A stretch of DNA of 64,000 bases from Octopus sinensis (lineage: Eukaryota), in contig NC_043021.1 of the NCBI RefSeq assembly GCF_006345805.1, forward strand, positions 11,904,001 through 11,968,000, written 5' to 3'. Positions 36,280-62,207 of the stretch are shown in pieces. How positions within the stretch are numbered: the stretch's first letter is position 1; every line of letters begins with the position of its first letter. The position numbers were made by a program, and so were the translations under genes. The notes under the pieces were generated by a model. The model worked only from the letters and a program-made list of their open reading frames with translations, did not search any database and was not told where the DNA came from.

Positions 36280-36769
36280 CTAGTAGTATTGCCCGGCTCA
36301 ACGGGGATTTCAGGGGAGAGTTTCAGGGAGTCGCTGACGATGTATCGTGATGATCAAAAATCCGGCCTGCTAAAATTTGGTTAAAGTGATTCAAACTGCA
36401 GACTCAACGCTAAATGGTCACATTTAATTCAAAGTGTTAAAAATGTTATGAAAACAATTGGTATGCGTTCACAAAGTCCAAACGATTAATACGAAAAAAC
36501 CCTCCAGGCTACATCCCGAAACTTCATTTCTTCGCCGAATTTCTATTTCTTTATTACCCACTAGGGGCGACACAGAACGTACAGAACAAGACATTGGGGA
36601 CATAGAACATTACAATTAAAAGTATGGAGAATGAATTTTTTTAATGAAAATGATATGGAAGTGATGCTGACGGCCCCATCCGCCAGCACCACTTACCTGT
36701 CCTTCATAACCCATCGTCATTTATCATCTATCAAAAGCCCATCTTTTCTTATCATTTTCTCACTTAACC

Positions 36770-37272
36770 GCAGGAGTGGCTGTGTGGTAAGTAGCTTGCT
36801 AACCAACTACATGGTTCCGGGTTCAGTCCCACTGCGTGGCACCTTGGGCAAGTGTCTTCTGCTATAGCCCCGGGCCGACCAATGCCTTGTGAGTGGATTT
36901 GGTAGACGGAAATTGAAGGAAGCCTGTCGTGTATGTGTATATATATATATATATTATATATTATATTATATATATTATATATTATATATTATATTATATT
37001 ATATTATATTATATATTATATTATATATTATATATTATATATTATATATATATATTATATTATATTATATATATATGTGTTTGTTTGTCCCCCTACCATT
37101 GCTTGACAGCCGATGCTAGTGTGTTTGCGTTCCCGTCACTTAGCGGTTCGGCAAAAGAGACCGATAGAATAAGTACTGGGCTTACAAAGAATAAGTCCCG
37201 GGGTCGATTTGCTCGACTAAAGGCGGTGCTCCAGCATGGCCGCAGTCAAATGACTGAAACAAGTAAAAGAGT
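36770..37272 (+). mobile_element. SINE family A with an expanded AT-rich microsatellite
   Basis: Full head and tail; inserted into Z. Confidence 0.92.
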
Positions 37273-37988
37273 AACCTTTCATACTCTTTTATCCTCTCAT
37301 CCGAAAATGTCACCTTAATCACTTTTATACCCTCATTTACACACATCATCATTGTGTCCATTACTTCACCTGCCATCACCATGTAACTCCCATCTTCTCT
37401 CTCATACCATGCATCTTTACCAAAGATTCTTTACGAATTCTCATTGTCTTCCTTTTTTACAAAACATAAAATATGGGACTTGGGATTTTGTTTACTTTGT
37501 GTGTCATTATTTTTTGGTTTTCTTGTAGGCGGGGAGTGGGTGGGATCTTTGTTTGCAGGGGAAGGATGGGGCTCAGAGGGTGCGGGTGGTGTTGGGGTTC
37601 CACATAGTTCGATTTTTCTTTTTCTTTTTTTCCTTACATTCTCCCATTTCGTCTGGCCTTCCTTCTCCTCCTCCGTTTCTTCCTCCTCAGCTTTTTCCTG
37701 CTCCACCTCCTCCTTTTCCTGGTTTACAGTTTCTTGTGGGGGGAGGGCAGTAGGCTCTTATGTGGGCCCCTCAGGCCACACTTATAGCACCTTGGTGCTC
37801 TGCCCTCCACCCACACACTCTCATTACTATATTCCCCAAGATTATGTTCTCCGCCATCTTTTCTAGTGCACCCTCCTCTGCTTGAACGCTCATCTCTAGC
37901 GTTTTGCCACGTAAACCTTCATTTTTTTTTTTACGGTCGCTTGCAAAATGTCCGTCTCTTCTTCCACATCTTTTATAATCGCCGTGAC

Positions 37989-38074
37989 GATTGGTTAAAG
38001 TGATTGGTTAAAGTGATTGATTGGGTTAAAGTGATTGGGTTAAAGTGATTGGGTTAAAGTGATTGGGTTAAAGT
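37989..38074. repeat. 13/14-bp tandem repeat GATTG(G)GTTAAAGT x6
   Basis: Visible directly; interrupts Z ORF1. Confidence 0.95.
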
Positions 38075-39031
38075 GAATCGCCCATTCACCCTCTGTGTGT
38101 GTGGGGGGGAATCCCTTCAACTCTTATTCTATTTATTCTTTGGTTCATGTAGGATGGTAATAATATTACTTTTTCAGTTTTTATTGTCTTCGTTGCCATT
38201 TTCTTTGCTATATTTTTGTTTCCAAACTGCACTATTATAGTTCCGAACTTGTTTCCTCTTGTCATGAATGTGATTTCTTCCTCCTCCTCTCTCCTTAGCG
38301 CCTCCTCAATATCTTTCATTTTTATCATTTCTACTTTCTTATTTTCTTTTCCATATGTCCGGTATTTTATAATTCTCTTCATAAACCATTCTTCGCGTTT
38401 CTCTGGAAGTAGTTTTACCTCGCCACCTTCTTTGGTTATGTAAGCTTGAAAACCTGGCAATTTTTCTAGGTTTATCTCTTTTTTTCCTCTGCTGCTCCAG
38501 CGTACGTTTTCCCGGCTTTAATATCCATATTATTCACAGCGCCGATCAGCTCGTCCTCAGAGGTCGATGCTTCTGACAAGGTCTCGAATAACCATTCCTC
38601 CTCCGACTCTTCCATTAGGGAGGGGTCGTCCATATCCTTTTGTCTGTCTCACCACAGACAGACAACGGCCGCCAGAGCAGAAACAGTACAACAAGAAACC
38701 GTATCAACAAACGTACAATAACAATAACAATTTTTGCAACTTACAATTCCAGGAGCGTTCAAAAACAACCGACGTTCTCAAAAATTCTTTGCCGAATTTC
38801 TAATTCTTTATTATCCACTAGGGGCGACACAGAAATGAACATTACAATCACGAATGATGATACATTAAAATGCTATTTTGGGGGTCAATTAACATTTTTT
38901 TTTCTTTTGTGATACATAAAATTCCAATGAAATACAAAGACAGTTTTACAAAATTGACGAATGCAGTGGGGCGGGTCCGCGGACCCCACGCTCCCCGCCA
39001 CGACACTTAGCCTTGTTTTTCTTTTACGGGT

Positions 39032-42000
39032 CTATCTCGTATTTGTGAGGGACCTTTTACTCGCCACATTTTTCCACCTTTCATCAAACACTTTCTTACT
39101 CAGGTTCCTCCTCTCCAGTTCTATTTGTCTTTTCAGGTGGAATTTGAAGTATTCCACCAGACTAGAACCGGAGATGAAGTCGCCTGTTAGCATTCCTTTC
39201 ACCCTTGTCTTCCATACTGCCTGTTTCGCAGTTGAAACCACAGAGAAAACAATTCTTACCTTCTTTCGTTAAGTCAGGTGGGCTGATTTTTACAATGGAT
39301 TCGGCTGATAGCTGTACTCTTTCTCCACTTGACATCAGTTGTTCGGCGTAAACCCACATGTCTGTCACCTCCGGGCACTGCACGATCGCGTGCGAGACGG
39401 TTTCCCTGTCTCGCCCACATCTCGCGCAGGTCGGGCTGACTGGGGCACCATGCCTTGCAAGTTTGTCTCGAACAGGTAAGGCTCCTCGGTAACACTGCCA
39501 AACCAGACTTCTGGATATTATCCAGTGCCTTCGGCCCGAATGTACGTTGGAACAGACTGGCCAGCTGATTATCGTCGAAACCTAGGGTTTCCCCTAGCGT
39601 ATCATCGTTACCGGCCTCTACCAACCCTCTATAAAACACAGCGGTAGAACCACTGCCGCAGGCATTGCCCGAGCGACGGAATAGTCGGAGTGCCTTACGA
39701 CACTCCGTGTACCATGTACCCAACTTCGATCTACGATTATACCAGTCTTCCCGTCCACCGAAACTGGCGAACCTGGGGAACATCTGCTTCGCCAGCGGAG
39801 ACCACACCCGTTCACCATCCAGATGGATCCACAGGTGCCTTAGCCTCAGCGCATTTCTGCGCATCATTAGCCACGGCATCCCTAGTCCACCCTTTAACGG
39901 TTTTTGACAACAAATAGAGCGTCTCACAAGTGGTTTCGAGCCCTTCCACAAAAAGTGAAAGAGCTGTCTCTCCAACTTGTTCAACCACGAATCCGGGCAA
40001 GGCAAGGCGGTAGGTGATCACCGATGCGATAAACACATTGGCTACCTCCGCCCTACCTTTCAGGGATAACCACCGCCAAGACCAGGTCTTGACTACTGCG
40101 GCCACCCTGCTCGATACCTCGCTCCAGTTCTCCTCTATTTGGAGGCCTGGTCCAAACCAGACCCCGAGCAACTTAATCGGACCCTCCGTCCAACGTCCCA
40201 CGACGTTGTCTGGAGGCATCGACTTGCCTCTCCAGGTGCCGAGTTGCAAGCCGACCGACTTTTCACGATTAACTTTTGCTCCTGTCACCGTCTCGTAAAC
40301 CTCTATGGCCTTGCCTACTTTACGTATGTGGTCCACTTCAGTCACGATGATAGTGATGTCATCCGCGTACGCCGAAACCGACATATCACGTCCTAGTTGC
40401 CTCGGGATGCCGCTCAGTTTTCGCAGCAGCGGCTCAAGAGCCACTACATACAAAAGCGAGGAGAGCGGACATCCCTGGCGGACCGAGCGTTTGACTTTGA
40501 ACGGCTTAGAAAGAAAGCCGTTCACCCGAACTACCGAGTCGACGTTGTCATACATTTCTAAGATCCACCTGAGGAAGCCAAGACCCAGGCCGAACTGAGC
40601 CTGAACGGACACCAGGTAGTGATGGTCGACCCTATCGAAAGCTTTTGACTGGTCTAAATGGACCACTGCCCCTCCCTTGCCGGGATCATTATTTATTCCC
40701 TCTAGCGTGTATCTAATAAGATGGAGATTATCCTGAATGGCTCTGCCTGGTACGGCGCACGTTTGCGCTTTCTCAATCAGTCCATTCGCGACACGCGCCA
40801 ATCTGTTCGATAACACTTTGGCCAAAATCTTCAGCTCTGAGTTAAGCAGTGATGGGCCTGAAATTATATATTACATCCCCCTTGCTCTGGTCCTTCTTGA
40901 TTAGCGTCACCACTCCCCGGCGCACAGATCTGGGAATAAACCCATTCTGCTGCCAGTTTGCGTAGACGTTCGTCAGTAAGTCCCCGAACAAGGCCGGCAT
41001 ACTTTTATAAAGCTCGTAGGGCAGACCATCCAGTCCCGGCGCCTTACCCGCACTGCAGTCTGCCATGGCCTCTATTACCTCCTCAGGTGTGATCGGCTTC
41101 TCACTACACTCCGTGCCCTGCCCCGAGAGGCGCGGCAGCCCGTCGAGGAGGTCCGTAAGGTCCCTCCTCTCATCCGCCCCCCCCCAAAAGAGCTGGGCGA
41201 AGTGGTCCTGAAAAGCTTGACACATCTCCTCGGGTTCGTCTGTCAACTTACCTTGTTGGTTCGTCAGAGATCGAATTGTGGCATCGTTGCCACGTTGGGC
41301 TTCCACCACTCGGGCCCATCCCGCGGCATTAATTCCTTCGCTCCCCATTGTACGTTGTCTAGCCCTGACAATGCAACCCATGTGTTTGGCTTCGAGGTGC
41401 TGGTTTAAAACCAGTCTCTTGGCCTTCACCTGAGCCGCGTTGCCAGTTCGCATTGCTTCCTCTAGGTCCTTAACTAGAGTAGTTTCTTTTCTAGCCTCTC
41501 TAGCTACGAGATCTGCACTATACCTAATACTCATATTTTATGGTTCGCTTGAGGGCATACCACCATTTGTTGTTAATAATGGAACCGGTCAATGCCCTCT
41601 GGATCATTAACCTAATCCTGTCACTGTACTCCTTAATCGCCAAAAGGGACGTATTAAGTTTCCAGTAACCAGGACCTTTATTTATCTTATCTACGTCTAG
41701 CTTACAGGTGACCATCTTGTGGTCACTGTAGCTGACTGTGGAGCTGTGGACTCTTAACTAGGTTTCTATCTACCTTCCTAATTAAAATCCTATCTATGTA
41801 AGACCTTGACGATCCGTCGCTGTTTGATCATGTCCACAATGGAGCGTCCGGATATTCCAGTCTATATGGATCTACCAGCTCAAAACGTCTTAGTAGATCC
41901 AGGAAGCCAGCGTTTCCTTTCCTATTCGTTTGCGAGCCTACACAGTCTACCTGCACATCGCAGATTGTGTTGAAGTCCCCAAACATTACTACAGGGTACG

Positions 42001-42391
42001 ATGTACTCAGAAACTTCTCCAGATTCCGAAAATAATCACTTTTCCCGTTACCGGAGGGTGCGTAAACCGCAACCAGCCTGATTGTCTTACGACTGCTGAA
42101 CGTCAACTCAACGACGACCAGCCTACCTTCTGGATCTGCAAAAATCAACTTTTTCCCAGAAACCCGGTTCTTTTTAACCAGGACCAACACCCCGCTTCCG
42201 CTGCCCGCCGGGTTCGGAGAGATAATTCCCTCGTAGCCGTCGAACAACGGGAGCAGATCTCTTGGCCCCTTTAACCGGGTTTCTGTGGCAACATCTAAAT
42301 CCCGTGACCTGATGTCATTTAGGAGGCGCCCTTGCTTCCAGCTCGTCATCAGGCCACGCACATTTAAACACCCTACACAAATGCGAGACAT
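39032..42391 (-). pseudogene. Tx1 ORF2 (endonuclease + reverse transcriptase), several frameshifts and a stop
   Basis: ORF fragments 41828-42391, 41524-41715, 40842-41534, 39812-40825, 39274-40005, 39162-39383 and 39032-39241 are colinear. Confidence 0.93.
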
Positions 42392-42571
42392 TATTTACCT
42401 TATCAGTTTTTTCCTGCTCTGGTGGTCGTGAGGGGGAAGTTCGCTTTAAATAATGACTCGTGAGGGTCGAGTCGCGGACCCTTAATGTCCCCCCCCGGGT
42501 ACTCCTCTCTTATATTATAGTTCATTCTGTCAATCTTGAAAACCTCGACATTCTTGGGGAGTACCCTATGT

Positions 42572-42864
42572 TGTTTTATTATTACCCACAAGGGGCGAAC
42601 ATAGATGGGACAATACAATCTGATGATGGGGTCAGATACACGAATGGGTTTTACAACAAAGCGAATTTTAAAAATTTACAAAAAATTACAAAATATAAAA
42701 AATCGAATGGAGAACAGACCGGAAGACATTACGGATGGAGTGGGAGCGGGTTTAGCTCGGACCCCACGAGCCCCGCCTCCCCACTGATACTTTGGTTTCG
42801 TCCGGTTTTACATTTATGTGGTAACATCCATTCGCAACTTTCGTGCTACATTTTTCCATCGTTC
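42572..42864 (-). mobile_element. 293-bp 3' fragment T of a related Tx1 element, flanked by ~160-bp direct repeats
   Basis: Encodes ERWKNVARKLRM (host ORF2 end: DERWKNVASKRS) plus a 3' UTR and GCCCCTTGTGGGTAATAATAAA tail. Repeats at 42411-42571 and 42865-43024. Confidence 0.88.
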
Positions 42865-44173
42865 TTCCTGCTCTGGTGGTCGTGAGGGGGAAGTCCGCTT
42901 TAAATAATGACTCGTGAGGGTCGAGTCGCGGACCCTTAATGTCCTCCGGGTACTCCTCTCTTATTATATTATAGTTCATTCTATCAATCTTGAAACCCTC
43001 GACATTCTTGGGAGTACCCTATGTGTGTTGATCTTGTGTGCCGTTGGGACATTGTCCAGATATTTAGTTAGTCTGTCGTTTGCATTGTTTATAGAAATGT
43101 ATACTGTCTCGAACTCTATTATTTTTTCCCCTTTTTGTGGGAAACCAAGTTTGGGAGGGGTGGGTTTCCCCCCCTGGGTGTTAGTCTTTTTTATGTCAGG
43201 GTTTGGTGTGTTCGTGTCTGCGTTTTTCCTTTTCTTCACTTTCCTTGGTGTTATAAATTCGTCTTGTGTTTTCTCTGCTGTTACGGTCTTATTTTTCCTC
43301 CTCTCCTCTTCTGTTTTTCTCTTCTCTTCTTCCTCCTTCTTGCGGGCGGGGCATTCTGCTCGGATGTAGCCCTTTTCGCCACACCCGTAGCATCTGGGCT
43401 TACGCCCTTCTACCACCACCCGCAAATTTATATCGTCCTCGAAGTCGATACTTTCAGGGACCTCTTCTAATGTTTCCGGTGTTGCCTGCACTATTACCTG
43501 CAGCGCCTGTCCCCTTCCAGTTCTCCTTCTGAATCTTCGTTATGTTAATAATTTTTATTCCTTCCGGCCCCATAAATAGGGCTGGAATGAGGCACTTTAC
43601 CTCAATTTCAATCGGGATCTCTTCTGTTTTGATTTTCGATGTACGCCTCCCCATATAGGTGGGGAGGAGAATTATTTCATTCGTTTTAATGGGGTTGATT
43701 GAGTGGATCTTTGCTTTTTCTTCCTCTTTGAAGTATACCACAATTGTGGCATACTTCCTTCCCCGTGTCACGAATTCTATGTCTGACCAAATTGGTTTTA
43801 AACATTTTTCCGCTTGTTCTTTACTGATTTTTTTTTTTTCCTATTTTTTTTTCCTTGATTAAAAATGATTTTAAAATCAGTTTTTTTTTTTTTCATTGTT
43901 TATCTTAATTTCTTCTTGGAGGGTAGCCTTTATGCTGCTCCCCTCCCTCTTAAACGTTTCCTTGTATTTTTCAAAGTCTATATCTTCTGGTTTGATGTCT
44001 TCTGTCTTTGTCTTTCTGCCTGCTGCGGCTGCAAAGTTGAATTTCTTTTTTCTTTTTAATTGGTGAACTTGTTTCAGCCTCTTCTGTTTTGTTTCCTTTT
44101 GTAGGTGAACCTACATTCTTTTCCTTCAAAGGTGAACCTTCATTGGTAACGACTTCGTTTTTTTGTTATCCAT
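42752..44173 (-). pseudogene. Tx1 ORF1 (RRM-like + zinc knuckle), frameshifted
   Basis: ORF fragments 43454-43771, 42976-43491 and 42752-42979. Similar to ORF1 of Z and V. Confidence 0.85.
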
Positions 44174-44188
44174 TTTTCACAAATGGAT

Positions 44189-44552
44189 GCAGGAGTGGCT
44201 GTGTGGTAAGTAGCTTGCTAACCAACCACATGGTTCCGGGTTCAGTCCCACTGCGTGGCATCTTGGGCGAGTGTCTTCTGCTATAGCCTCGGGCCGACCA
44301 ATACCTTGTGAGTGGATTTGGTAGACGGAAACTGAAAGAAGCCTGTCGTATGTATGTATGTATGTGTTTGGGTGTATGTGTTTGTTCCTCTAGCATTGCT
44401 TGACAACCGATGCTGATGTGTTTGCGTCCCCGTCACTTAGCGGTTCGGCAAAAGAGACCGATGTAATAAGTCCCGGGGTCGAGTTGCTCGACTGAAGGCG
44501 GTGCTCCAGCATGGCTGCAGTCAAATGACTGAAACAAGTAAAAGGGTAAAGA
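44189..44552 (+). mobile_element. SINE family A inserted in the 5' UTR of X
   Basis: Full copy; duplicated at 50596-50958. Confidence 0.92.
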
Positions 44553-44792
44553 TATATATATATATATATATATTTTTTTTTTTTTTAAATTGTGTTGACA
44601 CACAAAATATATTTCACAATATTTCCCCTCCTTAAAGGAGGGGAATAACAAAGTTATCTGGTTCACAAAACCAGACAAAGTTCAACACAATAAATCAACT
44701 GACAATTTTCAAACACGGAAATTAAACACAATTTTAACAATTCACTAGCTCACCTTCAAAAACACAACCGACGCCTTCAAAAATTCTTTGCC

Positions 44793-47700
44793 GAATTTCT
44801 ATTTCTTTATTACCCACTAGGGGCGACACAAAAATTACAAAACAATCACGAATGATGAAATACATTAATATGCTTTTTGAGGGCAATTAAATATCTGAAT
44901 GATAAATAAAATCGAATGAATACACAATTACATAGACAGTTCTACAAAATTGACGAATGCAGTGGGGCGGGTCCACGGACCCTACGCTCCCCGCCACGAC
45001 ACTTAGCCTTGTGTTTTTCTTTTACGGGTCTATCTCGTATTTGTGAGGGACCTTTTACTCGCCACATTTTTCCACCTTTCATCAAACACTTTCTTACTCA
45101 GGTTCCTCCTCTCCAGTTCTATTTGTCTTTTCAGGTGGAATTTGAAGTATTCCACCAGACTAGAACCGGAGATGAAGTCGCCTGTTAGCATTCCTTTCAC
45201 CTTGTCTTCCATACTGCCTGTTTCGCAGTTGAAACCACAGAGAAAACAATTCTTACCTTCTTTCGTTAAGTCAGGTGGGCTGATTTTTACAATGGATTCG
45301 GCTGATAGCTGTACTCTTTCTCCACTTGACATCAGTTGTTCGGCGTAAACCCACATGTCTGTCACCTCCGGGCACTGCACGATCGCGTGCGAGACGGTTT
45401 CCCTGTCTCGCCCACATCTCGCGCAGGTCGGGCTGACTGGGGCACCATGCCTTGCAAGTTTGTCTCGAACAGGTAAGGCTCCTCGGTAACACTGCCAAAC
45501 CAGACTTCTGGATATTATCCAGTGCCTTCGGCCCGAATGTACGTTGGAACAGACTGGCCAGCTGATTATCGTCGAAACCTAGGGTTTCCCCTAGCGTATC
45601 ATCGTTACCGGCCTCTACCAACCCTCTATAAAACACAGCGGTAGAACCACTGCCGCAGGCATTGCCCGAGCGACGGAATAGTCGGAGTGCCTTACGACAC
45701 TCCGTGTACCATGTACCCAACTTCGATCTACGATTATACCAGTCTTCCCGTCCACCGAAACTGGCGAACCTGGGGAACATCTGCTTCGCCAGCGGAGACC
45801 ACACCCGTTCACCATCCAGATGGATCCACAGGTGCCTTAGCCTCAGCGCATTTCTGCGCATCATTAGCCACGGCATCCCTAGTCCACCCTTTAACGGTTT
45901 TTGACAACAAATAGAGCGTCTCACAAGTGGTTTCGAGCCCTTCCACAAAAAGTGAAAGAGCTGTCTCTCCAACTGTTCAACCACGAATCCGGGCAAGGCA
46001 AGGCGGTAGGTGATCACCGATGCGATAAACACATTGGCTACCTCCGCCCTACCTTTCAGGGATAACCACCGCCAAGACCAGGTCTTGACTACTGCGGCCA
46101 CCCTGCTCGATACTCGCTCCAGTTCTCCTCTATTTGGAGGCCTGGTCCAAACCAGACCCCGAGCAACTTAATCGGACCCTCCGTCCAACGTCCCACGACG
46201 TTGTCTGGAGGCATCGACTTGCCTCTCCAGGTGCCGAGTTGCAAGCCGACCGACTTTTCACGATTAACTTTTGCTCCTGTCACCGTCTCGTAACCTCTAT
46301 GGCCTTGCCTACTTTACGTATGTGGTCCACTTCAGTCACGATGATAGTGATGTCATCCGCGTACGCCGAAACCGACATATCACGTCCTAGTTGCCTCGGG
46401 ATGCCGCTCAGTTTTCGCAGCAGCGGCTCAAGAGCCACTACATACAAAAGCGAGGAGAGCGGACATCCCTGGCGGACCGAGCGTTTGACTTTGAACGGCT
46501 TAAAGAAAGCCGTTCACCCGAACTACCGAGTCGACGTTGTCATACATTCTAAGATCCACCTGAGGAAGCCAAGACCCAGCCGAACTGAGCCTGAACGGAC
46601 ACCAGGTAGTGATGGTCGACCCTATCGAAAGCTTTTGACTGGTCTAAATGGACCACTGCCCCTCCCTTGCCGGGATCATTATTTATTCCCTCTAGCGTGT
46701 ATCTAATAAGATGGAGATTATCCTGAATGGCTTGCCTGGTACGGCGCACGTTTGCGCTTTCTCAATCAGTCCATTCGCGACACGCGCCAATCTGTTCGAT
46801 AACACTTTGGCCAAATCTTCAGCTCTGAGTTAGCAGTGATGGGCCTGAAATTATATATTACATCCCCCTTGCTCTGGTCCTTCTTGATTAGCGTCACCAC
46901 TCCCCGGCGCACAGATCTGGAATAAACCCATTCTGCTGCCAGTTTGCGTAGACGTTCGTCAGTAAGTCCCCGAACAAGGCCGGCATACTTTTATAAAGCT
47001 CGTAGGGCAGACCATCCAGTCCCGGCGCCTTACCCGCACTGCAGTCTGCCATGGCCTCTATTACCTCCTCAGGTGTGATCGGCTTCTCACTACACTCCGT
47101 GCCCTGCCCCGAGAGGCGCGGCAGCCCGTCGAGGAGGTCCGTAAGGTCCCTCCTCTCATCCGCCCCCCCCCCCAAAAGAGCTGGGCGAAGTGGTCCTGAA
47201 AAGCTTGACACATCTCCTCGGGTTCGTCTGTCAACTTACCTTGTTGGTTCGTCAGAGATCGAATTGTGGCATCGTTGCCACGTTGGGCTTCCACCACTCG
47301 GGCCCATCCCGCGGCATTAATTCCTTCGCTCCCCATTGTACGTTTCTAGCCCTGACAATGCAACCCATGTGTTTGGCTTCGAGGTGCTGGTTTAAAACCA
47401 GTCTCTTGGCCTTCACCTGAGCCGCGTTGCCAGTTCGCATTGCTTCCTCTAGGTCCTTAACTAGAGTAGTTTCTTTTCTAGCCTCTCTAGCTACGAGATC
47501 TGCACTATACCTAATACTCATATTTATGGTTCGCTTGAGGGCATACCACCATTTGTTGTTAATAATGGAACCGGTCAATGCCCTCTGGATCATTAACCTA
47601 ATCCTGTCACTGTACTCCTTAATCGCCAAAAGGGACGTATTAAGTTTCCAGTAACCAGGACCTTTATTTATCTTATCTACGTCTAGCTTACAGGTGACCA

Positions 47701-50700: not shown

Positions 50701-50964
50701 CCGACCAATACCTTGTGAGTGGATTTGGTAGACGGAAACTGAAAGAAGCCTGTCGTATGTATGTATGTATGTGTTTGGTGTATGTGTTTGTTCCTCTAGC
50801 ATTGCTTGACAACCGATGCTGATGTGTTTGCGTCCCCGTCACTTAGCGGTTCGGCAAAAGAGACCGATGTAATAATCCCCCGGGTCGAGTTGCTCGACTG
50901 AAGGCGGTGCTCCAGCATGGCTGCAGTCAAATGACTGAAACAAGTAAAAGGGTAAAGAGTAATA

Positions 50965-51026
<62 letters not shown>

Positions 51027-51197
51027 TGTTAAATTGTGTTGACACACAAAATATATTTCACAATATTTCCCCTCCTTAAAGGAGGGGAATAACAAAGTTA
51101 TCTGGTTCACAAAACCAGACAAAGTTCAACACAATAAATCACTGACAATTTTCAAACACGGAAATTAAACACAATTTTAACATTCACTAGCTCACCT
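44793..51197 (-). mobile_element. Near-identical tandem duplicate M of X, with the Y-type 3' UTR and two copies of insert T
   Basis: Body matches X apart from mostly 1-bp indels. 3' UTR matches 51235-51450. The R-T-R-T-R array spans 48393-49434. Confidence 0.9.
50596..50958 (+). mobile_element. SINE family A (duplicate of 44189-44552)
   Basis: Same position in the duplicated unit and the same diagnostic variants. Confidence 0.92.
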
Positions 51198-51234
51198 TCA
51201 AAAACACAACCGACGCCTTCAAAAATTCTTTGCC

Positions 51235-52543
51235 GAATTTCTATTTCTTTATTACCCACTAGGGGCGACACAAAAATACAAACAATCACGAATGATGAAA
51301 TACATTAATATGCTTTTTGAGGGCAATTAAATATCTGAATGATAAATAAATCGAATGAATACACAATTACATAGACAGTTCTACAAAATTGACGAATGCA
51401 GTGGGGCGGGTCCACGGACCCTACGCTCCCCGCCACGACACTTAGCCTTGTGTTTTTCTTTTACGGGTCTATCTCGTATTTGTGAGGGACCTTTTACTCG
51501 CCACATTTTTCCACCTTTCATCAAACACTTTCTTACTCAGGTTCCTCCTCTCCAGTTCTATTTGTCTTTTCAGGTGGAATTTGAAGTATTCCACCAGACT
51601 AGAACCGGAGATGAAGTCGCCTGTTAGCATTCCTTTCACCCTTGTCTTCCATACTGCCTGTTTCGCAGTTGAAACCACAGAGAAAACAATTCTTACCTTC
51701 TTTCGTTAAAAAATCAGGTGGGCTGATTTTTACAATGGATTCGGCTGATAGCTGTACTCTTTCTCCACTTGACATCAGTTGTTCGGCGTAAACCCACATG
51801 TCTGTCACCTCCGGGCACTGCACGATCGCGTGCGAGACGGTTTCCCTGTCTCGCCCACATCTCGCGCAGGTCGGGCTGACTGGGGCACCATGCCTTGCAA
51901 GTTTGTCTCGAACAGGTAAGGCTCCTCGGTAACACTGCCAAGCCAAATACTTCTGGATATTATCCAGTGCCTTCGGCCCGAATGTACGTTGGAACAGACT
52001 GGCCAGCTGATTATCATCGAAACTGGGGTTTCCCCTAGCGTATCATCGTTACCGGCCTCTACCAACCCTCTATAAAACACAGCGGTAGAACCACTGCCGC
52101 AGGCATTGCCCGAGCGACGGAATAGTCGGAGTGCCTTACGACACTCCGTGTACCATGTACCCAACTTCGATCTACGATTATACCAGTCTTCCCGTCCACC
52201 GAAACAGGTGAACCTGGGGAACATCTGCTTCGCCAGCGGAGACCACACCCGTTCACCATCCAGATGGATCCACAGGTGCCTTAGCCTCAGCGCATTTCTG
52301 CGCATCATTAGCCACGGCATCCCTAGTCCACCCTTTAACGGTTTTTGACAACAAATAGAGCGTCTCATAAGTGGTTTCGAGCCCTTCCACAAAAAGTGAG
52401 CTGTCTCTCCAACTTGTTCAACCACGAATCCGGGCAAGGCACGACGGCAAGGCGTTAGGTGATCACCGATGCGATAAACACATTGGCTACCTCCGCCCTA
52501 CCTTTCAGGGATAACCACCGCCAAGACCAGGTCTTGACTACTG
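51235..52543 (-). mobile_element. 5'-truncated Tx1 LINE Y
   Basis: ORF2 C-terminal part and 3' tail, with private substitutions relative to X/M. Similarity stops abruptly at 52543. Confidence 0.92.
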
Positions 52544-53149
52544 AGTAAAGTTCACTATTCAATGCATGGGATAAGGCCTAAACAAGCACATTATCGATTT
52601 TTGCACTTGCGAGATGGATTTCGGAACAGAAATAGCGCGGTTCAATTTTCATTCGCCTAAACTTTAAGTGACCCATTTTTGGTGGTTCTATGATTTGTTG
52701 GCTAGGAGATGTGCCGGGAAGTTAAACACACACACAAGTTGAGTTTTATATATATATATATATATATATAGATAATTCCACAGTCACGAATAGACTTATA
52801 TTCTCTTTGTGTATATGTATAAGCTCAAAGCTGGAGAAACAGCTATAGATTTAAAAAGAAAACTGCTGGCCTATTGTAATGCATCCTGCAAAAGAAATGG
52901 AGCCTGTAAATGATCAGTTAGTTGTCCACAAGTCAGGAAGAAAAACTCCCCTCCCCCCACATGCAGTAATAGAGCAGTTGTATTTTTATATATCGTTTAG
53001 CAGAGTATGTTCTGAACTAGTGAGGAGGGGACACTTTCCATACATACCCTGCAGTATTTAATACTACAAGGCTTCGTTATATATGACGGCGAGGCGCACA
53101 CTTGTGAAGATATAATTTAATGTTTGAGGTTTCTTTCGTTAGTATGCCA

Positions 53150-56100
53150 TTTGTCAATGTAATGTTCATTTTACAGTGAATTATACCCTTTTTGCTTCTA
53201 CTAACATGGCGTTTGTTTCTCCATCATTAAGTCTCTCAGCCCTTTTCGATCCTGGTTTGACACATTCCCACTCTCATCTAGCCTTAGGTCTCTTTGTTCT
53301 CGTCCTTTCTGAAGTTGTTTAAAAAAAAAAAATCTATCCAAACCAGTGGAATGGCGGAACTGCAGGGACGTTAGACCAAGTGGAATGGCGGAACTGCAGG
53401 GACGTTAGACCAGAGCCTTGTGGTCTTCATTTCATTTTTGCATTTTGAGTTCAAACCCACCGCTATTGCCCACTTGGGTGGTAGACTTAACCTGCTACCA
53501 AGTTTAACAACCTGGTCTCTTTGAAAGAAATCCACACTGCTACAAGCATTCAAGTACTGTTTCTTTGATATGTTGACGTATTAAGAATATACAATTCAAA
53601 GTGTTAGTTTGTATTCTTCAGATGGGAATTCTCTGATTCTCAACTTTCGATGGAAATATGGTATTCTCGTGACTTTACCGTAGACCAGTTTTTTCCCATT
53701 GTCTTGGCTGTGTATCACAGCTCCGCTCTTCTTTTAACGATTTGCTTCTCTAATTTTGATGTTGTTTGTCCATATTTTTCATTCTGATTCTCTTTTTCCC
53801 TCTCTCAACGACTTCTTGAGTGGTTTTCCAAAGGTCACTGGATCTTGATCAAGATCTATGCAATTGTAGCTTTTCTTTGAGGTTCAGTTGGATGTTGCTT
53901 TCCAATAAGGTAGTAACCTTTTTCCGTTCACACTTCTGTTGCATGATTTATAGGTATCTTATAATTCCTAAATTTACAGGATTTTAGCAGTATACACCAA
54001 ACTCAGTGGTGACGAGGTATCTCCTGCATCGTAACAATTTTATCTTGGATGGGAATTGTCTTTATCCCTCAGATTGCACTGGAAACATGAGTATCATTTT
54101 GACTTTACACTAGTTTTCTTTCACTGTCTTGGCTGTGAAACAGCTCGGTCTTCTAACGATCTGCTAGTTTTGTCTGATTGTACATCTGTCAGACTTGCCT
54201 TTTTCCCTCTTAGAACAGCTTCTTGAACAGTCTCTCCAAGGTCACTGGATCTTGTACAAGATCTATATATATATCATAGCTTCACCGTTCTGAAACCTTC
54301 ATGAGGTCCAGTGGGATGTTCCTTTCTTCTTTCCTACCTTTTGACCGTGAGATTATTGACATTATAATCAGATTTCATCACTTTTGGTATTCTACTGCTC
54401 TCTGTCGGTGAAATTGAGGTCTGTCCACTCTGTTAACCTGGGCCACGATCATTCTGATGGATTCTCGTCAGATTTTCATCATGAGTATCTCGCGAAAGTT
54501 AACTGTCACGTGATCAAATTAGCTTGATGGCACCCATTCCTATCCGAGCGGTACAAGTATAATCACATTTGTACTTGCTTAAATATATTTGTTCGTTGTG
54601 AGTGTATAAATTTAAGAACATTTAATTGACGTGAGTGAAATTGCGTTTACTCGACGTGGATGTACAAATATAAATTTGATAACTTTATTGCATGTTTGAC
54701 TTGATCAAGAGTTGCAGATGTGCTTATTAAGTTTTAGTTACTCAGAAATGACAGTTGCATACTCCCGTTCACTTAGGATTTATCGAATTCAAGAGTTGAT
54801 GGCATTAAAGTTTAACCACCGAACAAGCAGACCTTCCCAAACGTATTCCAGCTGTGACCATCCATCATTTTAGATGGACCACATTCTCCGAGTTCTTAAT
54901 AAAAACAGCGGAAGTAAAACTTTAGGGAGATTTGGCTGCAATTTCCAGTATGTCAGTTGACGTGATCTCGGTGGTTGTAGCATGTCGGTGAGTGAATCGT
55001 TGCCACAAGTTGCTGTAATGATCTTATTTCAGATCCTCTCAAATGTTAAGTTAATTTTTTGGCTCAAAAAGCAAGGCCATGTAGGGGGACATGGAGTTAT
55101 ATACAGAGAGGGTGTTCATGCAAAGAGTTCAGGCCATTTCTGGTCAAGAGAGACTTTGAACCGAGCGGTCGTCGGCATCTTCACTATCTCGTCCGGCAGC
55201 TTATTCCACGGATCCACAACCCGGACGGAGAAAGCCCCTCTCCTTCGATTGAGATGAAATCATCGCAGATAGAGCTTTCCGGAGTGACCCCGCAGCCGAC
55301 GCTCTAGAGCTCTTTCAAGAGGTTACACTTTCCGCTTATGATGTTGTGAGTGAGAATGAGATTACCACTGCGTCGTCGTTTATTCTAGAGAATAAAGGTC
55401 AAGCGTCTTCAGCCTTTCTTCATAAGACAAATGCTTGAGGCCAAGAAACATGCGAGTGGCCAGCTTCTGAACATATGTACTATGCATATGCGGGTAGTGC
55501 TCTTTTATCTGTTTCGCTTGACCTTTTTATGTATATCATCAGGCAGTATATTACTGGTTACAGCATGGAACTAGTCAGAACGATCGTCTGTTTTCACGCC
55601 TACCATTCGAGCAATAACTGCTGACTCTTCAGACGTCTTTTTCAGATGCATCCTGATGTAGAGTTGGTTAGGCGGCGTCTGTTTGATATGGTAGAACATC
55701 CTGTTATATCCTTAGGTGGCTTTCAATGCATTTTTTCCTTCAGTCCAGCTTCATGATGCCCTTACCCCACCCACAGTCAGTCCCAAGCACTTTTTTTTTT
55801 TTTGTTGTTTTTTTAATACATTCTTTGTCAGAGAGCTGCATAGATAACCAAGCAACTAACTCGAAAGTTGTTTCCACTGACGTTCTCTTGTTCGGAACAC
55901 CTCTGAGGTTATAAAACTTTTATACACAAAGAATATAATAAAAGTCCTTTTGTGACAATGTGCAAGTGCATAGGTGAAGAAATGATCATAGAATACTAAC
56001 CACGTGCTGGCCTATTGTAATCATCTGAAACAAAAGAGCCTGTAACTTATCAGTTAGTCGTCCAAAGTCAGAAAAACAAAAAAACACAACCTCCCCCCCC

Positions 56101-56233
56101 CCACCCACACACACACACACTGTACGAGTGAGAGCACATATTCTTATATATTGTTCAGTTGTGTATATTCTGAACTCGCAAGGAGGGGACAACTTTACAT
56201 AACCTGTGGTATTTAATGCTACAAGGCTTCACG

Positions 56234-56240
<7 letters not shown>
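53150..56240 (-). mobile_element. Old degenerate non-LTR element Q2, homologous to Q1
   Basis: Colinear matches, e.g. 53560-53780 with 34180-34400, 54360-54540 with 34500-34690, 55640-55910 with 36020-36279. MVTAGI...AINS RT-like motif. Confidence 0.55.
55075..55475 (-). mobile_element. CR1-clade LINE 3' fragment
   Basis: Translates as VQKLATRMFLGLKHLSYEERLKTLDLYSLE ... RLRGHSGKL ... FSVRVVDPWNKLPDEIV. Confidence 0.9.
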
Positions 56241-56280
<40 letters not shown>

Positions 56281-56281
<1 letters not shown>

Positions 56282-57290
56282 CTCTTCTTCTGTTATTTGT
56301 TTCTCCTCTTCTTCAGTGTCTTTCTCTTGAGGTTCCATCATGATTTCCCTTTCCTTTCCTTTGGTGGGGGTGGGCAGTTGGCTCTTATGTGGCCTCTCTG
56401 GCCACGCTTATAACATCGTGGGGCCCTGCCCTCCACCCACACTCTCATAATAGCGTTCCCCATCCTTATGTTTTCTGTCAGTCTTTCTATTGTTTCCGCT
56501 TGTCTGTACATTCATGTCTAAGGTGGCACCCCTCAAGCCTTCATATTTCATGGTGGTGTGGAGGATGTCCACCTTTTCCTCGTACCCCTTGATTACTGCT
56601 GCCGTTATGTATTCTCCCTCTAGGTGTGGGGGTATCCCCTCCACCCTAATTCTTGTCATTTTCCTATTTAGATACGATGGAAGTAAGTGTATCTTTGTTT
56701 TTACCACCTTGGTTGCCATTTTTCTGGCGACATTCTCACTTCTGTATTGAACCGTCACAGTTCCATACTCCATCCCTCTTGTCAAAAAAATTATTTCTTC
56801 TCCAGTCCGCTTTAATGCCTCTTCAATGGCTTCCATATTCACTATTTCAATCCTTCTTCCTCCATTAACGTACACTCCATATTTGATGGTTCTACGGTTG
56901 AACCACTCGCCACGCTTTGCTGGATGTGACAGCTCGACTTCGCCGTTCTCCTCCTCTTTCATAAAATCCTGGAAGCCTGGCAATTTAGCCAGGTCCACCT
57001 CTCTTTCTTTCGACCTCCTCATCACTCCTGCGTACGTACTTTCAAGCCTCCTGTCCATCTTTTCCACTGCTCTTTCCAACTCCTCCTCAGATGTCGATAA
57101 TTCCGACAAACTTTCAAACAAATTCTTCCCGGCCATCTCACCCATTAGGGAGAGGCGGTTCATAATCCTTTGTCTGTCTCACCTCAGACAGACAACGGCT
57201 GCCAGAACAGACGCCGTGTGACGCGAAACCGTATCAACAATTATTCAAATAACAAATATTCAAAAAACAAATATGGCAACTTAGAATAGA
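56281..57290 (-). mobile_element. Element V of the Z family (5' UTR + ORF1; 3' part missing)
   Basis: ORF 56408-57163 (FLTRGMEYGTVTVQY, LLPSYLNRKMTRIRVEGIPP) and a frameshifted RCYKRGQRGHIRANC knuckle. 5' UTR is similar to Z. Confidence 0.85.
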
Positions 57291-57685: not shown

Positions 57686-58139
57686 AATGTGGCAAAAAGA
57701 AATGAGATACTTACTCACACCCATGGAAGAAGCGAACACTAAGTCATGAGCACAATTAAGTACCTCAAATACATCCAAAATAGAAATACTCCAGCCCATT
57801 CAAGACACGTGCGATTTGAACTAATGCTCTCACAGAATATTTTTTCGGAAAAAATTTTATCCTACATTAGATATATATATATATATTTTCATATAGAGAT
57901 AGTAGGACCCTTCATCCCACCATATAAAAGAATTTTAATTTAAATACTTACTATTTATATCTCGGCTACACGTGTTTCTTGAGGTTCATTTCCCGGTTCC
58001 TTAACCACGCCGTGTTTTGCTGGAGCCTTTCTTAAAATATAGCCCCAATCATCAGGCCTCTACATCACTTTATCATAGTTTGATACTAAAAATTGTTTTA
58101 ATTTTTTAAACAAATATGTGTAAATAGGTTTGCCGGACC

Positions 58140-58540: not shown

Positions 58541-58609
58541 TGGTTCCTCTCTTCTTTTATGCTTATAAATATCTGTAAATATAAGACCATCCAGATTTCT
58601 GAGTACCTC

Positions 58610-58611
<2 letters not shown>

Positions 58612-58697
<86 letters not shown>
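58612..58697. repeat. (TA)n microsatellite
   Basis: Visible directly. Others at ~15617-15657, 18712-18752, 50962-51018 and 56236-56280. Confidence 0.95.
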
Positions 58698-58699
<2 letters not shown>

Positions 58700-59170
58700 T
58701 TTTTCTTTTCCCCCGTCTGTCTTGATAGACAATGGGTCGCGCCAAGGGTGGGGCCTACTTTGATGATGAGCAGCGTCTGCTGTGACTGAACAGTCCAATT
58801 CTAGAGTGGCAGTCCCTGGTACAGTTGCTGCCCACGAACATCGATGGGTGCGTGTGGGGTGTTGCTGCAGTTGTCCTCCTCCTGTCCCGCCTGTCCGACC
58901 ACAGCTGTGCTCTCCTTTCCTCAGCCATGGAAACGCCTTTCCTCACTGTCCGACGCCAGGTAGAGCGGTCAGCAGCTGTTACCTCCCACGTGTCCACACA
59001 GATGTTGGCAGTCCTCAGGTCGCGCTTGCACACATCCCTGTATCGTAGCTGTGGACGTCCCTTGGGTCGGGATCCCGTGGTGAGTTCGCTGTACAGGATG
59101 TCTTTAGGCATGCGACCGTCCTGCATGCGGCAGACGTGTCCGAGCCAGCGCAGTTTATATCTCGAGGTCG
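58698..59170 (-). mobile_element. RTE-clade LINE 3' fragment
   Basis: LRWLGHVCRMQDGRMPKDILYSEL...GRPQLRYRD...CHSRIGLFSHSRRC plus a short 3' UTR. Confidence 0.93.
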
Positions 59171-59570
59171 CTAGTGATGGCAACCCTCAAAATATATAAG
59201 ACTGGAATAGTAGTGCTCAAATGAGCTGTATTCAGTTATTAATCCGAGAGGGGGCAATGTGAGCCGCAACTAAAGGAACATTACAAAATCCACAGAAAGA
59301 TCAAACACATACATATATTCAATTATATCTACAGAACAGATATAAGGTCCGACGTTTAAAAATATAGTCATATATAAACATCATATAAAAATATATAAGA
59401 ATCAATGTTGTATATATATACGCTTAAAATCATAAAACATTTGGTATAAATTTGTCAAATTAAAAATTTGGAATTTTAATACGTCATTTTAATGTCATTG
59501 TATATTTTATTACCCCAGAGAAAACTACAGAGAAGGTAAATATAGAAATTTACAAAAATACATATATGTT

Positions 59571-59646
59571 CATCTACGGTTTCGGAGACGCGCCAATTAA
59601 TATGAAACATCATATATTTGAAATTGACACTCCCCTCGTCAGGATG
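59571..59646 (-). ncRNA. Type I hammerhead ribozyme candidate with an extended stem II
   Basis: CATC-CTGACGA-GGGGA...TCTCC-GAAA-CC-GTA-GATG, with a perfect 4-bp stem I and a GUA triplet. Confidence 0.7.
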
Positions 59647-59824
59647 TTTTTTTTTTTTTTTATACACAACACATAGTACATGGAAACAAATGCACAATTA
59701 CATACCAGCTATATGCGAAAGACCAGACATTACGTACTACCCCCAACCCAAAAAAAAAAAAATGGTGGAATGAAGGGGCCTACTATCTCTAAATGAATAT
59801 ATATGTATGTGTGTATATGTGTAT

Positions 59825-60190
59825 ATGGAGGCGCAATGGCCCAGTGGTTAGGGCAGCGGACTCGCGGTTTCGATTCCAAGACCGGGCGTTGTGAGTGTTT
59901 ATTGAGCAAAAACACCTAAAGCTCCACGAGGCTTCGGCAGGGGATGGTGGTGATCCCTGCTGTACTCTTTCACAACTTTCTCTCACTCTTACTTCCTGTT
60001 TCTGTTGTACCTGTATTTCAAAGGGCCGGCCTTGTCACTCTGTGTCACGCTGAATATCCCCGAGAACTACGTTAAGAGTACACGTGTCTGTGGAGTGCTC
60101 AGCCACTTACACGTTAATTTCACGAGCAGGCTGTTCCGTTGATTCGGATCAACCGGAACCCTCGTCGTCGTAACCGACGGAGTGCTTCCA
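59825..60190 (+). mobile_element. SINE family B, full length
   Basis: Matches the reverse complement of 4512-4883. Confidence 0.9.
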
Positions 60191-60354
60191 TCCATATGTG
60201 TATAAGTATATATGTGTGTGTGTGTGTGTGCGTATGGCAAGGTATACTTGTGAAGGTACGATTTAATGTTTGGGATTTGGGATTCATCGGAACTGCATTT
60301 GTCAATGTAAAGGGTTTTTACTTTCGTAAAAGTAAAGCACTATATTTGTTGGCA

Positions 60355-60579
60355 GTGAGCTGGCAGAAACGTTAGCACGCCGGGCAAAATGCTTAGCGGT
60401 ATTTCATCTGTCGTTACGTTCTGAGTTCAAATTCCGCCGAGATCGACTTTGCCTTTCATCCTTTCGGGGTCGATAAATTAAGTAACAGTTTCGCACTGGG
60501 GTTGATGTAATCGACTTAATCCCTTTGTCTGTCCTTGTTTGTCCCCTCCGTTTAGCCCCTTGTGGGTAGTAAAGAAATG
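60355..60579 (+). mobile_element. SINE family C with a 10-bp TSD
   Basis: TTTGTTGGCA at 60345-60354 and 60580-60589. Confidence 0.92.
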
Positions 60580-60608
60580 TTTGTTGGCATTAGTAAGCAC
60601 ATCAACTG

Positions 60609-60639
<31 letters not shown>

Positions 60640-61429
60640 AAATAAAACAGGCGTCGGAACTTGATGGGATCCTGGTTTTGCCAGCTCCTGTCAAGCCGTC
60701 CAACCTATTCCAGCATGGAAAACGAGTATGTTGTTTTGCTGTGAATTTACCTGACTGTAGATAAGCTTTGTCTATTTAGAATTAACCCATGGACCTTGCT
60801 AATACACCTATACCCCAACCTTTTCTCATAACTCTGAGGAAACGGGATGGGTCTTTTTTTTTTTTTTTTTTTTTTTTTCTTCTCTCTCTAATGAAACTTT
60901 CAGGCATAGTTTACAATTATATTAGAATTTAACGTGGGAAAGATTGGTGCGCACGCATTCGTACATCACATAATTTTTCTCAAAATGTGATTTAGTGGCT
61001 CCCATTGACTCAATTTTGTCATTTGCGAGGTCTTTTTCTTTGACTTTTAGGTAACCTGACATTTTAAGGATCGTAAGATACCTCGGAGAAAAATCAGGTT
61101 ACCTCTATAAATCGGTATATAACCAAGTGGTTTTCCTATGGCAAAATATTTTTCGGTACAAAACCAACACGTCTCCAATTCTTCGACATGATTCAGTATT
61201 TGTTCTTAAATTACAAATTCCTCCCATTTTCTGAATTTTTTGTGTCTACGTTAACTGATCGTTAATTTCTCTCTCTTTATCTTCACTTCGACATTCCGTC
61301 TCGAGTGTCTACCTTACGTTTCCTTTTCAAGGGAGGTAACTTCAACATTAGCTTTTAACTCCCTTGTGATGTATTCTATCATTTAACATTTTCCAAGCGG
61401 GCATAGGTTGGACGATTTGACGAAAGGCG

Positions 61430-61632
61430 ACGAGCTGGCAGAAACGTTAGCACACCGGGCGAAATGCGTCTGTCGTTACGTTGAGTTCAAATTCTGCCGA
61501 GGTCGACTTTGGTTTTCATCCTTTCGGGGTCGATAAATTACCAGTTACGCACTGGGGTCGATGTAATCGTCTTAATACCTATGTCTGTCCTTGTTTGTTC
61601 CCTCTGTTTTTAGCCCCTTGTGGGTAATAAAT
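61430..61632 (+). mobile_element. SINE family C
   Basis: Full head to tail, with an imperfect TTTGAC(G/A)AAAG TSD. Confidence 0.9.
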
Positions 61633-61981
61633 AGGTTTGACAAAAGCTAGCAAAATTAGGAGCCACGCCAGGTTTCATAGTCCGTTTTAGCATGGTTTTC
61701 CCTGCTCGATGCCCTTTCTAATGCCAACCACTTTACACATCTTGCTTTTAGATCAACTACAGTTAAAACCCTTTACGTTGACTAGTAGTGTCAATGAATC
61801 ACAAAATCCTAACATTAAATGGTGTTAATACAAATTAGATGCCGTGAATATTAAACGAGCAAATCGCATCAGAAGCATTAAATTTCACATATGGCAGCAG
61901 TCTGCTCTCAAGTATAGCTAGACCACTTCAAGCACAAATATAGCTTTAGTTCCTTAAGTGAGAACTGGTATGACTTTTGAG

Positions 61982-62207
61982 GCGGCGAGCTGGCAGAAAT
62001 GTTAGCACGCCGGGCGAAATGCGCAGCCATATTTCGTCTGCCGTTATGTTCTGAGTTCAATTTCTGCTGAGGTCGACTTTACCTTTCCTTTCGGGGATCG
62101 ATAAATTAAGTACCAGTTACGCACTGGAGTCGATATAATCGACTTAATCCTTTTGTCTGTCCTTGTTTGTCCCCTCTGTTTAGCCCCTTGTGGGTAGTAA
62201 AGAAATG
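61982..62207 (+). mobile_element. SINE family C with a 15-bp TSD
   Basis: GGTATGACTTTTGAG at 61967-61981 and 62208-62222. Confidence 0.93.

Follow-up and report, generated by a model that had tools for sequence, protein, structure and literature searches.

The window analysed here is a stretch of 64,000 nucleotides of Octopus sinensis DNA (NCBI RefSeq assembly GCF_006345805.1, contig NC_043021.1, positions 11,904,001 to 11,968,000 of the forward strand); all positions given below are counted from its first letter. The window is dense in repeats, as seen by self-BLAST. Among them are a long interspersed element (LINE) of the L1 type, present as copies X, M and Y, a derivative with only the first open reading frame (ORF1) of such an element, Z, two partial LINE-type sequences, W and T, and a short interspersed element (SINE) family, SINE C. 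The evidence reported here supports the conclusion that one homologous 3' module ends the LINE, the ORF1-only derivative and the SINE.

The LINE lies on the minus strand. Copy X (38802-44783, tandem unit 1) was recognised from Pfam domains and open reading frames (ORFs); its tail carries a G>A change (GGATAA). Its ORF1 (43771-42976) contains the CCHC-like knuckle CYGCGEKGYIRAEC, and its ORF2, broken by several frameshifts, contains endonuclease (APE, 42391-41828), reverse transcriptase (RT, 40825-39812) and zf-RVT (about 39506-39165) domains. Copy M (44801-51225, tandem unit 2), outlined by self-BLAST, by tblastn of the X ORF pieces and by its tail, is composed, in order, of a 5' untranslated region (UTR), ORF1, three copies of an inter-ORF segment A interleaved with two pieces of T, a broken ORF2, a 3' UTR of about 229 nt and the tail, with its hairpin at 44812-44824. 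Copy Y (51243-52562), found by self-BLAST and tblastn, corresponds to the 3' 1.3 kb only, from about RT residue 237 to the tail. Self-BLAST shows units 38758-44754 and 44755-51196 to be 97.7-98.4% identical, with a third, partial unit at 51197-52543. The same antisense CORE-type SINE is found within the 5' UTR of X (44191-44554) and of M (50598-50956), the same T insert is present in both, and one ORF2 frameshift is common to X, M and Y, where the RT frame enters ...YRLALPGFVVEQ while relatives read ...LPCPDSWLNK. Because of the common SINE, T insert and frameshift, and of the high identity, X, M and Y are DNA-level tandem copies of one already dead LINE. They represent a single event and not independent instances; a first-pass annotation of this DNA, made from its letters, had listed the tail of each.

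Pfam matches were obtained for APE (PF03372, 6.8e-06), RT (PF00078, 5.2e-24) and zf-RVT (PF13966, 8.7e-11, this last on the Y copy); zf-RVT is also found on the relatives P0001 and P0002. Among solved structures in the PDB, the RT matched human L1 ORF2p first (1e-18) and R2 next (1e-13). The CCHC knuckle is intact in Z (CYKCGLRGHIRAYC), and is altered by H>Y in X and M and by C>R in an old copy, Q, described below. Judging from its APE, RT and zf-RVT domains, from the knuckle-bearing ORF1 and from the structure ranking, the LINE is assigned to the L1 clade. It probably falls into the Tx1 subgroup, as suggested by the ORF1 knuckle and by the published octopus annotation, in which L1-Tx1 is the sole L1-like group (PMC13282606). 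In the earlier designation as an L1/Tx1 LINE, the L1 clade is supported by the domains; the Tx1 label rests on architecture and published annotation rather than on a phylogeny. The nearest named relative of the LINE protein comes from the cuttlefish Acanthosepion pharaonis. Exact-protein look-ups of the APE ORF of the window and of the Q-copy ORF1 returned no record, and a profile search of JGI metagenome contigs for relatives of the ORF2 C-terminus returned one distant, uninformative locus.

Z (36545-38784, minus strand) is about 1.74 kb long, plus a 503-bp CORE-type SINE at 36772-37274. Its 5' UTR is homologous to that of X, its ORF1 is decayed, its short 3' UTR is split by the CORE-type SINE, and its tail is identical to that of M; by its sequence it is a HAL1-like, ORF1-only derivative. 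W (34872-35040, minus strand) consists of the 3' approximately 165 nt of an element, 79% identical to the Z tail region, with hairpin GCCC-TTTAT-GGGT; similarity to ORF1 or ORF2 was searched for upstream of W and not found. T (42576-42861, minus strand) joins the final 48 nt of an ORF2 (RWKNVARKLRMDVTT*) to a 238-nt 3' UTR, with hairpin GCCC-CTTGT-GGGT, and has a copy of the 168-bp inter-ORF segment A on either side; its duplicates in unit M lie at 48556-48832 and 48995-49274, M containing an extra 443-bp repeat. T is not a further class of passenger: its first part is homologous to the ORF2 C-terminus and a 3' UTR comes next, so that it represents the terminal portion either of a related LINE or of a derivative that has lost ORF2. 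Finally, region 32157-38747 is colinear with 53166-57287 at 63-76% identity, the latter being an older duplicate which includes a Z-like ORF1 (copy Q; ORF 56408-57163). The Z and W tail segments were looked for in copy Q and neither is present, nor is any recognisable tail, and a search of the Z, W and Q regions for ORF2 remnants found none.

SINE C is about 228 bp long, non-coding and dispersed, with five copies of 180-228 bp. On the plus strand, 60351-60578 is flanked by the target-site duplication (TSD) TTTGTTGGCA of 10-12 bp, 61981-62206 by the 15-bp TSD GGTATGACTTTTGAG, and 61425-61634, which has internal deletions and a tail ending in ...GGGTAATAAATAGG, by the 11-bp TSD TTTGAC(G/A)AAAG. 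On the minus strand, no TSD was found for 19680-19905, whose hairpin lacks 1 nt (GGCCCTTGTGGGT); 10342-10520 is 5'-truncated and is followed by 119 bp that repeat its upstream part and run on as a SINE of the C2 type described below. TSDs of 10-15 bp had been attributed to the family as a whole; they are present in three of the five copies, the exceptions being the copy at 19680, without any, and that at 10342, with its odd 119-bp repeat. Since the target sequences are unrelated, the three TSDs point to separate retrotransposition events. By self-BLAST the copies are about 84-91% identical among themselves, which indicates that the family is old. ARAGORN, relaxed settings included, and Rfam detected no tRNA in the SINE C head, where a B-box-like GAGTTCAAATTCC was noticed by eye only; of the earlier description as a tRNA-SINE, the SINE part is borne out by short length, dispersal and TSDs, and the tRNA head went undetected.

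Around two tail pieces an 'A-tail-A' layout is seen, in which the piece lies between long direct repeats, of 168 bp around T (42408-43029) and of 119 bp around the SINE C copy at 10342 (10222-10539). The layout suggests that the 5' junction was formed when the incoming piece annealed to a homologous element already in place, or else that unequal crossing-over took place later.

The tail, TGTNGCCC-N5-GGGTARTAA(AGAAAT), occurs 13 times in the window, against about 0.6 expected by chance. In the window scans, the 15-mer GGGTARTAAAGAAAT (up to 2 mismatches) gave 10 matches, with 0.49 expected and none of 100 shuffles reaching 10, the match at 11200 being unrelated sequence; the longer pattern TGTNGCCCNNNNNGGGTARTAA, which includes the hairpin (up to 3 mismatches), gave 14 matches, with 0.62 expected, 13 of which are real. 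SINE C tails are located at 10348 and 19686 on the minus strand and at 60551, 61609 and 62179 on the plus strand. LINE-type tails are located, all on the minus strand, at 34878 (W), 36551 (Z), 38808 (X), 44807 (M) and 51249 (Y), and T tails at 42579, 48559 and 48998. When the last 100 nt were aligned, the homology across all tail classes was found to cover the last 45-50 nt or so and to end upstream of that, about twice the 25 nt or so first assigned to the tail. Over the last 45 nt, pairwise identity is 70-91% among tails and 70-80% between SINE C and LINE-type tails. A poly(A) or A-run after the tail was looked for in the copies of the window and is present in none; genomic copies stop 5-9 nt past AAUAAA. 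Pattern scans and alignment confirm the tail on X, M/Y, T, Z, W and SINE C, at positions which had been accurate to about 8 nt, together with the G>A of X and the TTTAT loop of W; the two further T copies, at 48559 and 48998, had been overlooked. An exact-pattern scan for the tail in JGI metagenome contigs gave no match.

The X, M and Y units are duplicates, and so are the T copies, which brings the number of independent tail-bearing events to about 9 rather than 13: five in SINE C and one each for the LINE, Z, W and T. Together with the position of eight of the 13 tails within 34.8-51.3 kb, these duplicates would fit a local artefact, that is, duplication, gene conversion or mis-assembly in a single repeat-rich cluster. 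SINE C, however, is found at 10, 19 and 60-62 kb, on both strands and with distinct TSDs; the W, Z, T and X tails differ from one another by 17-26%; and the same module is found on LINEs of other assemblies. The dispersed SINE copies with their own TSDs and the occurrence of the module in other assemblies largely refute this explanation, to which a very low probability is given. The tail is carried by five dispersed SINE copies and by four independent LINE-type elements.

Within the window, the GCCC/GGGU stem of the tail hairpin is constant and three loops occur: X, M, Y and Z have CUAGU, SINE C and T have CUUGU, and W has UUUAU. Since these tails carry no covariation, relatives were examined, the ends of their elements being set by copy comparison. 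The hairpin reads GGCC-CUUGU-GGCC, followed by AAUAAAAGAAAU, in L001 (a JGI contig; ORF2 62% identical); AAGGC-CU(U/C)GU-GCCUU in L002 and two copies in L005 (ENA ERZ21867824); UGGC-CUUGU-GCCG in L004, from the cuttlefish A. pharaonis; and GGC-CUUGU-GCC in L007 and L008. It lies 12-50 nt from the 3' end in all these relatives with located ends (L001, L002, the two L005 copies, L004, L007 and L008). From one lineage to another, neither the CUUGU loop nor the C-G pair that closes it changes, and the rest of the stem alternates between C-G and G-C pairs. In the covariation count 95% of the cells are paired and three of the four pairs are changed on both sides; the covariation score and the paired fraction were reached by none of 500 shuffles, and slid controls were 27-50% paired. 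RNAalifold, applied to 13 tails, predicts only this hairpin, with three of the four pairs compensatory. In this check, proposed in the first-pass annotation as an alignment of 3' ends, compensatory changes of the stem are therefore seen in the relatives by both counts and RNAalifold. The accompanying statement that the stem is kept while the loop varies describes the window correctly; when lineages are compared the reverse holds, with an unchanging loop and closing C-G and a covarying stem. The tail of L001 (1994-2105), the closest relative, ends in ...GGCCAATAAAAGAAAT, followed by C(ATT)n up to the contig end, which may represent a microsatellite that served as target or else terminal repeats that arose at initiation.

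Two further SINE subfamilies have the head and body of SINE C and different tails. C2 (10152-10340, minus strand, and 33642-33809, plus strand) ends in ...GCTGGCCTTGTACCAAAATTTGAAATTTT, like LINE tails of the L007/L008 type, and C3 (12052-12260, minus strand) ends in ...CCCTCCCCCAAAATTTCAGGCCTTGTTCCTAAAGGAGAAAAC / ...CCCTCCCCCAAAATTTCAGGCCTTGTTCCTAAAGG, like those of the L002/L005 type; these assignments to LINE lineages were made by inspection of the C-rich block, the spacer and GGCCTTGTNCC. It follows that one SINE body has acquired at least three versions of the module. Such acquisition, as read from the sequences, is difficult to account for if the LINE machinery does not require the module. 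A further copy of a C2/C3-like SINE, interrupted by a CORE-type SINE, lies at 11893-12051 on the minus strand.

The explanation that we consider probable is a SINE/LINE partnership of the stringent type within the L1/Tx1 clade, in which the hairpin and its flank act as the cis-signal for template choice by ORF2. LINE transcripts would end, without poly(A), in the module of about 45-50 nt, made up of a C-rich block, a spacer, a 4-bp G/C hairpin whose CU(U/A)GU pentaloop is closed by C-G, and then AAUAAAGAAAU. The ORF2 protein would bind the hairpin, thereby choosing the template and fixing the start of target-primed reverse transcription, which would begin a few nucleotides past AAUAAAG and so yield copies without poly(A). 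Any RNA bearing the module could then be copied in trans, candidates being Z, the W fragment and SINE C; mobilisation would accordingly depend on the tail, and a LINE subfamily would drive SINE C. A covarying stem with a conserved loop matches what is known for ZfL2, in which recognition is specific for the loop and generic for the stem (PMC4176376). In the first-pass annotation a stringent L1/Tx1 system with at least two classes of passenger had been proposed; the shared module on Z and on the SINE, the absence of poly(A) and TSDs of L1 size agree with it, T being no further class.

The same tail could be common by descent and yet serve as a module for 3'-end processing or stability, composed of AAUAAA and the hairpin, mobilisation being relaxed or depending on another feature. 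AAUAAA or AGUAAA is indeed present in every tail and in all relatives, and the hairpin is thermodynamically unremarkable. As copies end 5-9 nt past AAUAAA without poly(A), however, reverse transcription appears to start inside the module and not on poly(A); moreover, a polyadenylation signal for RNA polymerase II is useless to a SINE of the RNA polymerase III type, three SINE subfamilies have each gained a lineage-specific version of the whole module, and the stem covaries. A processing module is therefore considered unlikely.

Several observations weigh against the stringent partnership. The hairpin is tiny, and the minimum folding energy of the window tails is no better than that of shuffles (z from -0.5 to -1.1). 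The covariation rests on about three stem states, and hence on few evolutionary events, and two of the relatives were first found by a search that required pairing. Three more distant relatives (L006, L009 and L010) showed no such hairpin in a search with four loop patterns and a stem of at least 4 bp where element ends were not delimited. The closing pair is broken in the C2 and C3 copies, no intact LINE copy is present within the window, and the conserved AAUAAA could reflect 3'-end processing instead. Moreover, the X-type LINE differs from SINE C by an A for U in the loop and by an extra 17-mer.

This last difference bears on the identity of the partner. SINE C and T have the loop CTTGT and no 17-mer, and X, M, Y and Z have CTAGT with the 17-mer; the driver of SINE C could therefore be a sister subfamily, either T-like or outside the window, rather than the X/M/Y-type LINE. 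The age of SINE C, as judged from its divergence, and the 13 recently active L1-Tx1 families reported in O. vulgaris (PMC13282606) point in the same direction. Over the last 45 nt, however, SINE C is as near to Z (80%) as to T (77%), and the T type is represented by one truncated copy only. A sister driver is quite conceivable, at somewhat less than even chances.

The 17-mer, AGAAATTCGGCRAAGAA, follows the tail of Z at 36528-36544 on the minus strand, with identical copies on that strand after X (38785-38801), M (44784-44800) and Y (51226-51242); these are 4 matches, where 0.5 would be expected. Since the copy at 38785-38801 also abuts the 5' end of Z, the 17-mer lies on both sides of Z, with 16 of 17 positions identical. 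Past the 17-mer, X and Z have a further 29 nt or so of 5' UTR in common; what follows the 17-mer at the 3' side of Z is unrelated. The W tail is followed by the weakly similar AGGCAGCGAGGAAAGA, and the 17-mer was looked for upstream of the 5' break of Y and is absent there. The elements are arranged head to tail on the minus strand in the order W-Z-X-M-Y. The array is explained in part by DNA tandem duplication, for X, M and Y, and for the remainder by a process in which new elements come to lie precisely against the boundary of older ones. The old copy Q, whose 5' end is not preceded by the 17-mer, speaks against the 17-mer as the 5' terminus of the elements. Two alternatives are left for the 17-mer, a target site used repeatedly and a 3' extension specific to the LINE.

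According to the first alternative, insertion would be site-specific: the endonuclease would re-nick AGAAATTCGGCRAAGAA, or its TCGGCRAAGAA part, and the site would be regenerated as a TSD, with head-to-tail pile-up of elements. The bracketing of Z by nearly identical 17-mers of TSD-like length, their position exactly after the X, M, Y and Z tails, the restriction of similarity past the 17-mer to the places where homologous 5' UTR comes next, and the weak similarity after the W tail all agree with this, as does copy Q, by which the 17-mer is not simply an element 5' terminus. Target specificity is known for elements of the Tx1 group (PMC4494074, PMC3472496). On the other side, the flanks and TSDs of the five SINE C copies are unrelated, Y has no upstream 17-mer, and the junctions are only about 2-3 independent ones, X, M and Y being duplicates. 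In the two L005 copies, besides, the common sequence runs about 15 nt past AATAAAG before the flanks diverge, so that the 17-mer could be an extension found in LINEs only; such an extension could correspond to a cleavage site about 17 nt past AAUAAA, followed by an A-rich stub. Site-specific insertion is regarded as possible and rather doubtful; it is compatible with the stringent partnership, to which it would add a targeting step. In L008:4596-13629 (ENA ERZ21867824), from a related genome, the 5' UTR of a second Tx1-like LINE starts at most about 100 bp past the first tail, in the same orientation, and head-to-tail placement may be common in the Tx1-like lineage.

Other features of the window were recorded. 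The CORE-type SINE, tRNA-like, about 400 bp long and with an internal CA/TA microsatellite, is present in eight copies (5766-6160, 8376-8777, 9008-9404, 20305-20685, 29631-30002, 36772-37274, 44191-44554 and 50598-50956), three of which sit antisense within LINE-type elements; since its tail is different (...CAGTCAAATGACTGAAACAAGTAAAAG), a different LINE partner is presumed. An RT fragment of a different LINE, at 21432-22441 on the plus strand, shares only 28% identity with the RT of X across 81 residues, and its RT is followed by a stretch rich in Cys; the shared tail was not found near it. A full-length match to U6 snRNA (14170-14278, plus strand; 91 bits, against a gathering score of 44) lies among inverted and direct copies of a repeat of about 210 bp (13633-13858, 14286-14496 and 14650-14875), also found at 23082-23266. 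Two intact ORFs for multi-finger C2H2 zinc-finger proteins (339-1472 and 16795-17850, both on the minus strand), 47% identical, are spaced by 16,456 bp. Exact-protein look-ups matched both, at this spacing, to record CM016883.1 of GCA_006345805.1, and the first also has an identical protein in GCA_951406725.2, an O. vulgaris assembly. Tandem repeats include a satellite with a period of about 46 bp, which runs off the window end (63459-64000), an array with an 18-bp period (62586-62720) and a repeat at 2318-2936 that lies within the open reading frames at 2206-2945.

SINEs make up more than a tenth of the octopus genome (PMC13282606), and the literature searched, Repbase and Dfam lying outside the search, names no LINE partner for octopus SINEs and describes no structure of their tails; a text search of that literature for the sequences of the SINE and of the tail gave no match. 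If the proposed partnership is true, the structured tail shared with L1/Tx1 LINEs identifies a partner for an octopus SINE and adds an animal to the cases of stringent recognition within the L1 clade, where the tail-sharing SINE/LINE pairs described so far come from plants and a green alga. The model of Ohshima, of an ancestral stringent state repeatedly relaxed, would thereby become testable in animals, and a small hairpin with a fixed loop is a handy target for binding and retrotransposition assays. More tentatively, the CUUGU-pentaloop hairpin might be a template-recognition signal of the Tx1-like lineage conserved across coleoids, from octopus to cuttlefish, with SINE subfamilies of the Deu type having repeatedly swapped tails among its sub-lineages. 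If so, part of the octopus-specific SINE expansion would have been driven by stringent L1/Tx1 elements, and stringent recognition would gain support as the ancestral state of the L1 clade, relaxed independently in mammals and plants. In addition, head-to-tail arrays may have been built by the X-type subfamily through renewed insertion at the site it already occupies.

The closest known systems are the stringent pairs of the L1 clade, three among 58 pairs surveyed (Ohshima 2012, PMC3472496): maize and sorghum SINEs are paired with LINE1-1_ZM, and Chlamydomonas SINEX-3_CR with L1-1_CR. As in octopus, a conserved 3' end is common to an L1-clade LINE and a SINE, and contains a hairpin with compensatory changes. 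The hosts there are plants and an alga, and the Chlamydomonas pair ends in poly(A), whereas in octopus the host is an animal, poly(A) is absent, the CUUGU pentaloop is conserved and SINE subfamilies swap tails. The contrast drawn in the first-pass annotation, between shared-tail pairs typical of L2, CR1 and RTE and a relaxed mammalian L1, is less novel in the light of these pairs and of the crocodilian Tx1 SINEs (PMC4494074).

In the L2 clade, for UnaL2/UnaSINE1 of eel and ZfL2-1/ZfL2-2 of zebrafish, a 3' stem-loop is needed for retrotransposition (PMC4176376). These elements resemble the octopus proposal in that the loop is specific, the stem generic, and the end consists of short terminal repeats rather than poly(A); they differ in clade, in their longer stem and in having their function shown by experiment, the octopus proposal being drawn from sequence. 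For the Tx1-Mar LINEs and SINEU of crocodilians, a SINE is likewise presumed to be moved by a LINE of the Tx1 group, a group with target preference (Kojima 2015, PMC4494074), but the partnership was deduced from common targets and snRNA-derived 5' heads, and not from a common 3' tail (PMC4494074). HAL1 (half-L1) and other ORF1-only non-autonomous LINEs are known as well, as cited in PMC5786205. Like HAL1, Z keeps 5' UTR, ORF1 and 3' tail and is devoid of ORF2; unlike HAL1, it has a Tx1-like parent with an ORF1 of the RRM/CCHC type, and is represented by one decayed copy and the older relative Q (53166-57287). The distinction between stringent and relaxed recognition and the sharing of tails between SINEs and LINEs are established; what the octopus elements add to them is a deeply conserved loop and the swapping of tails among sub-lineages.

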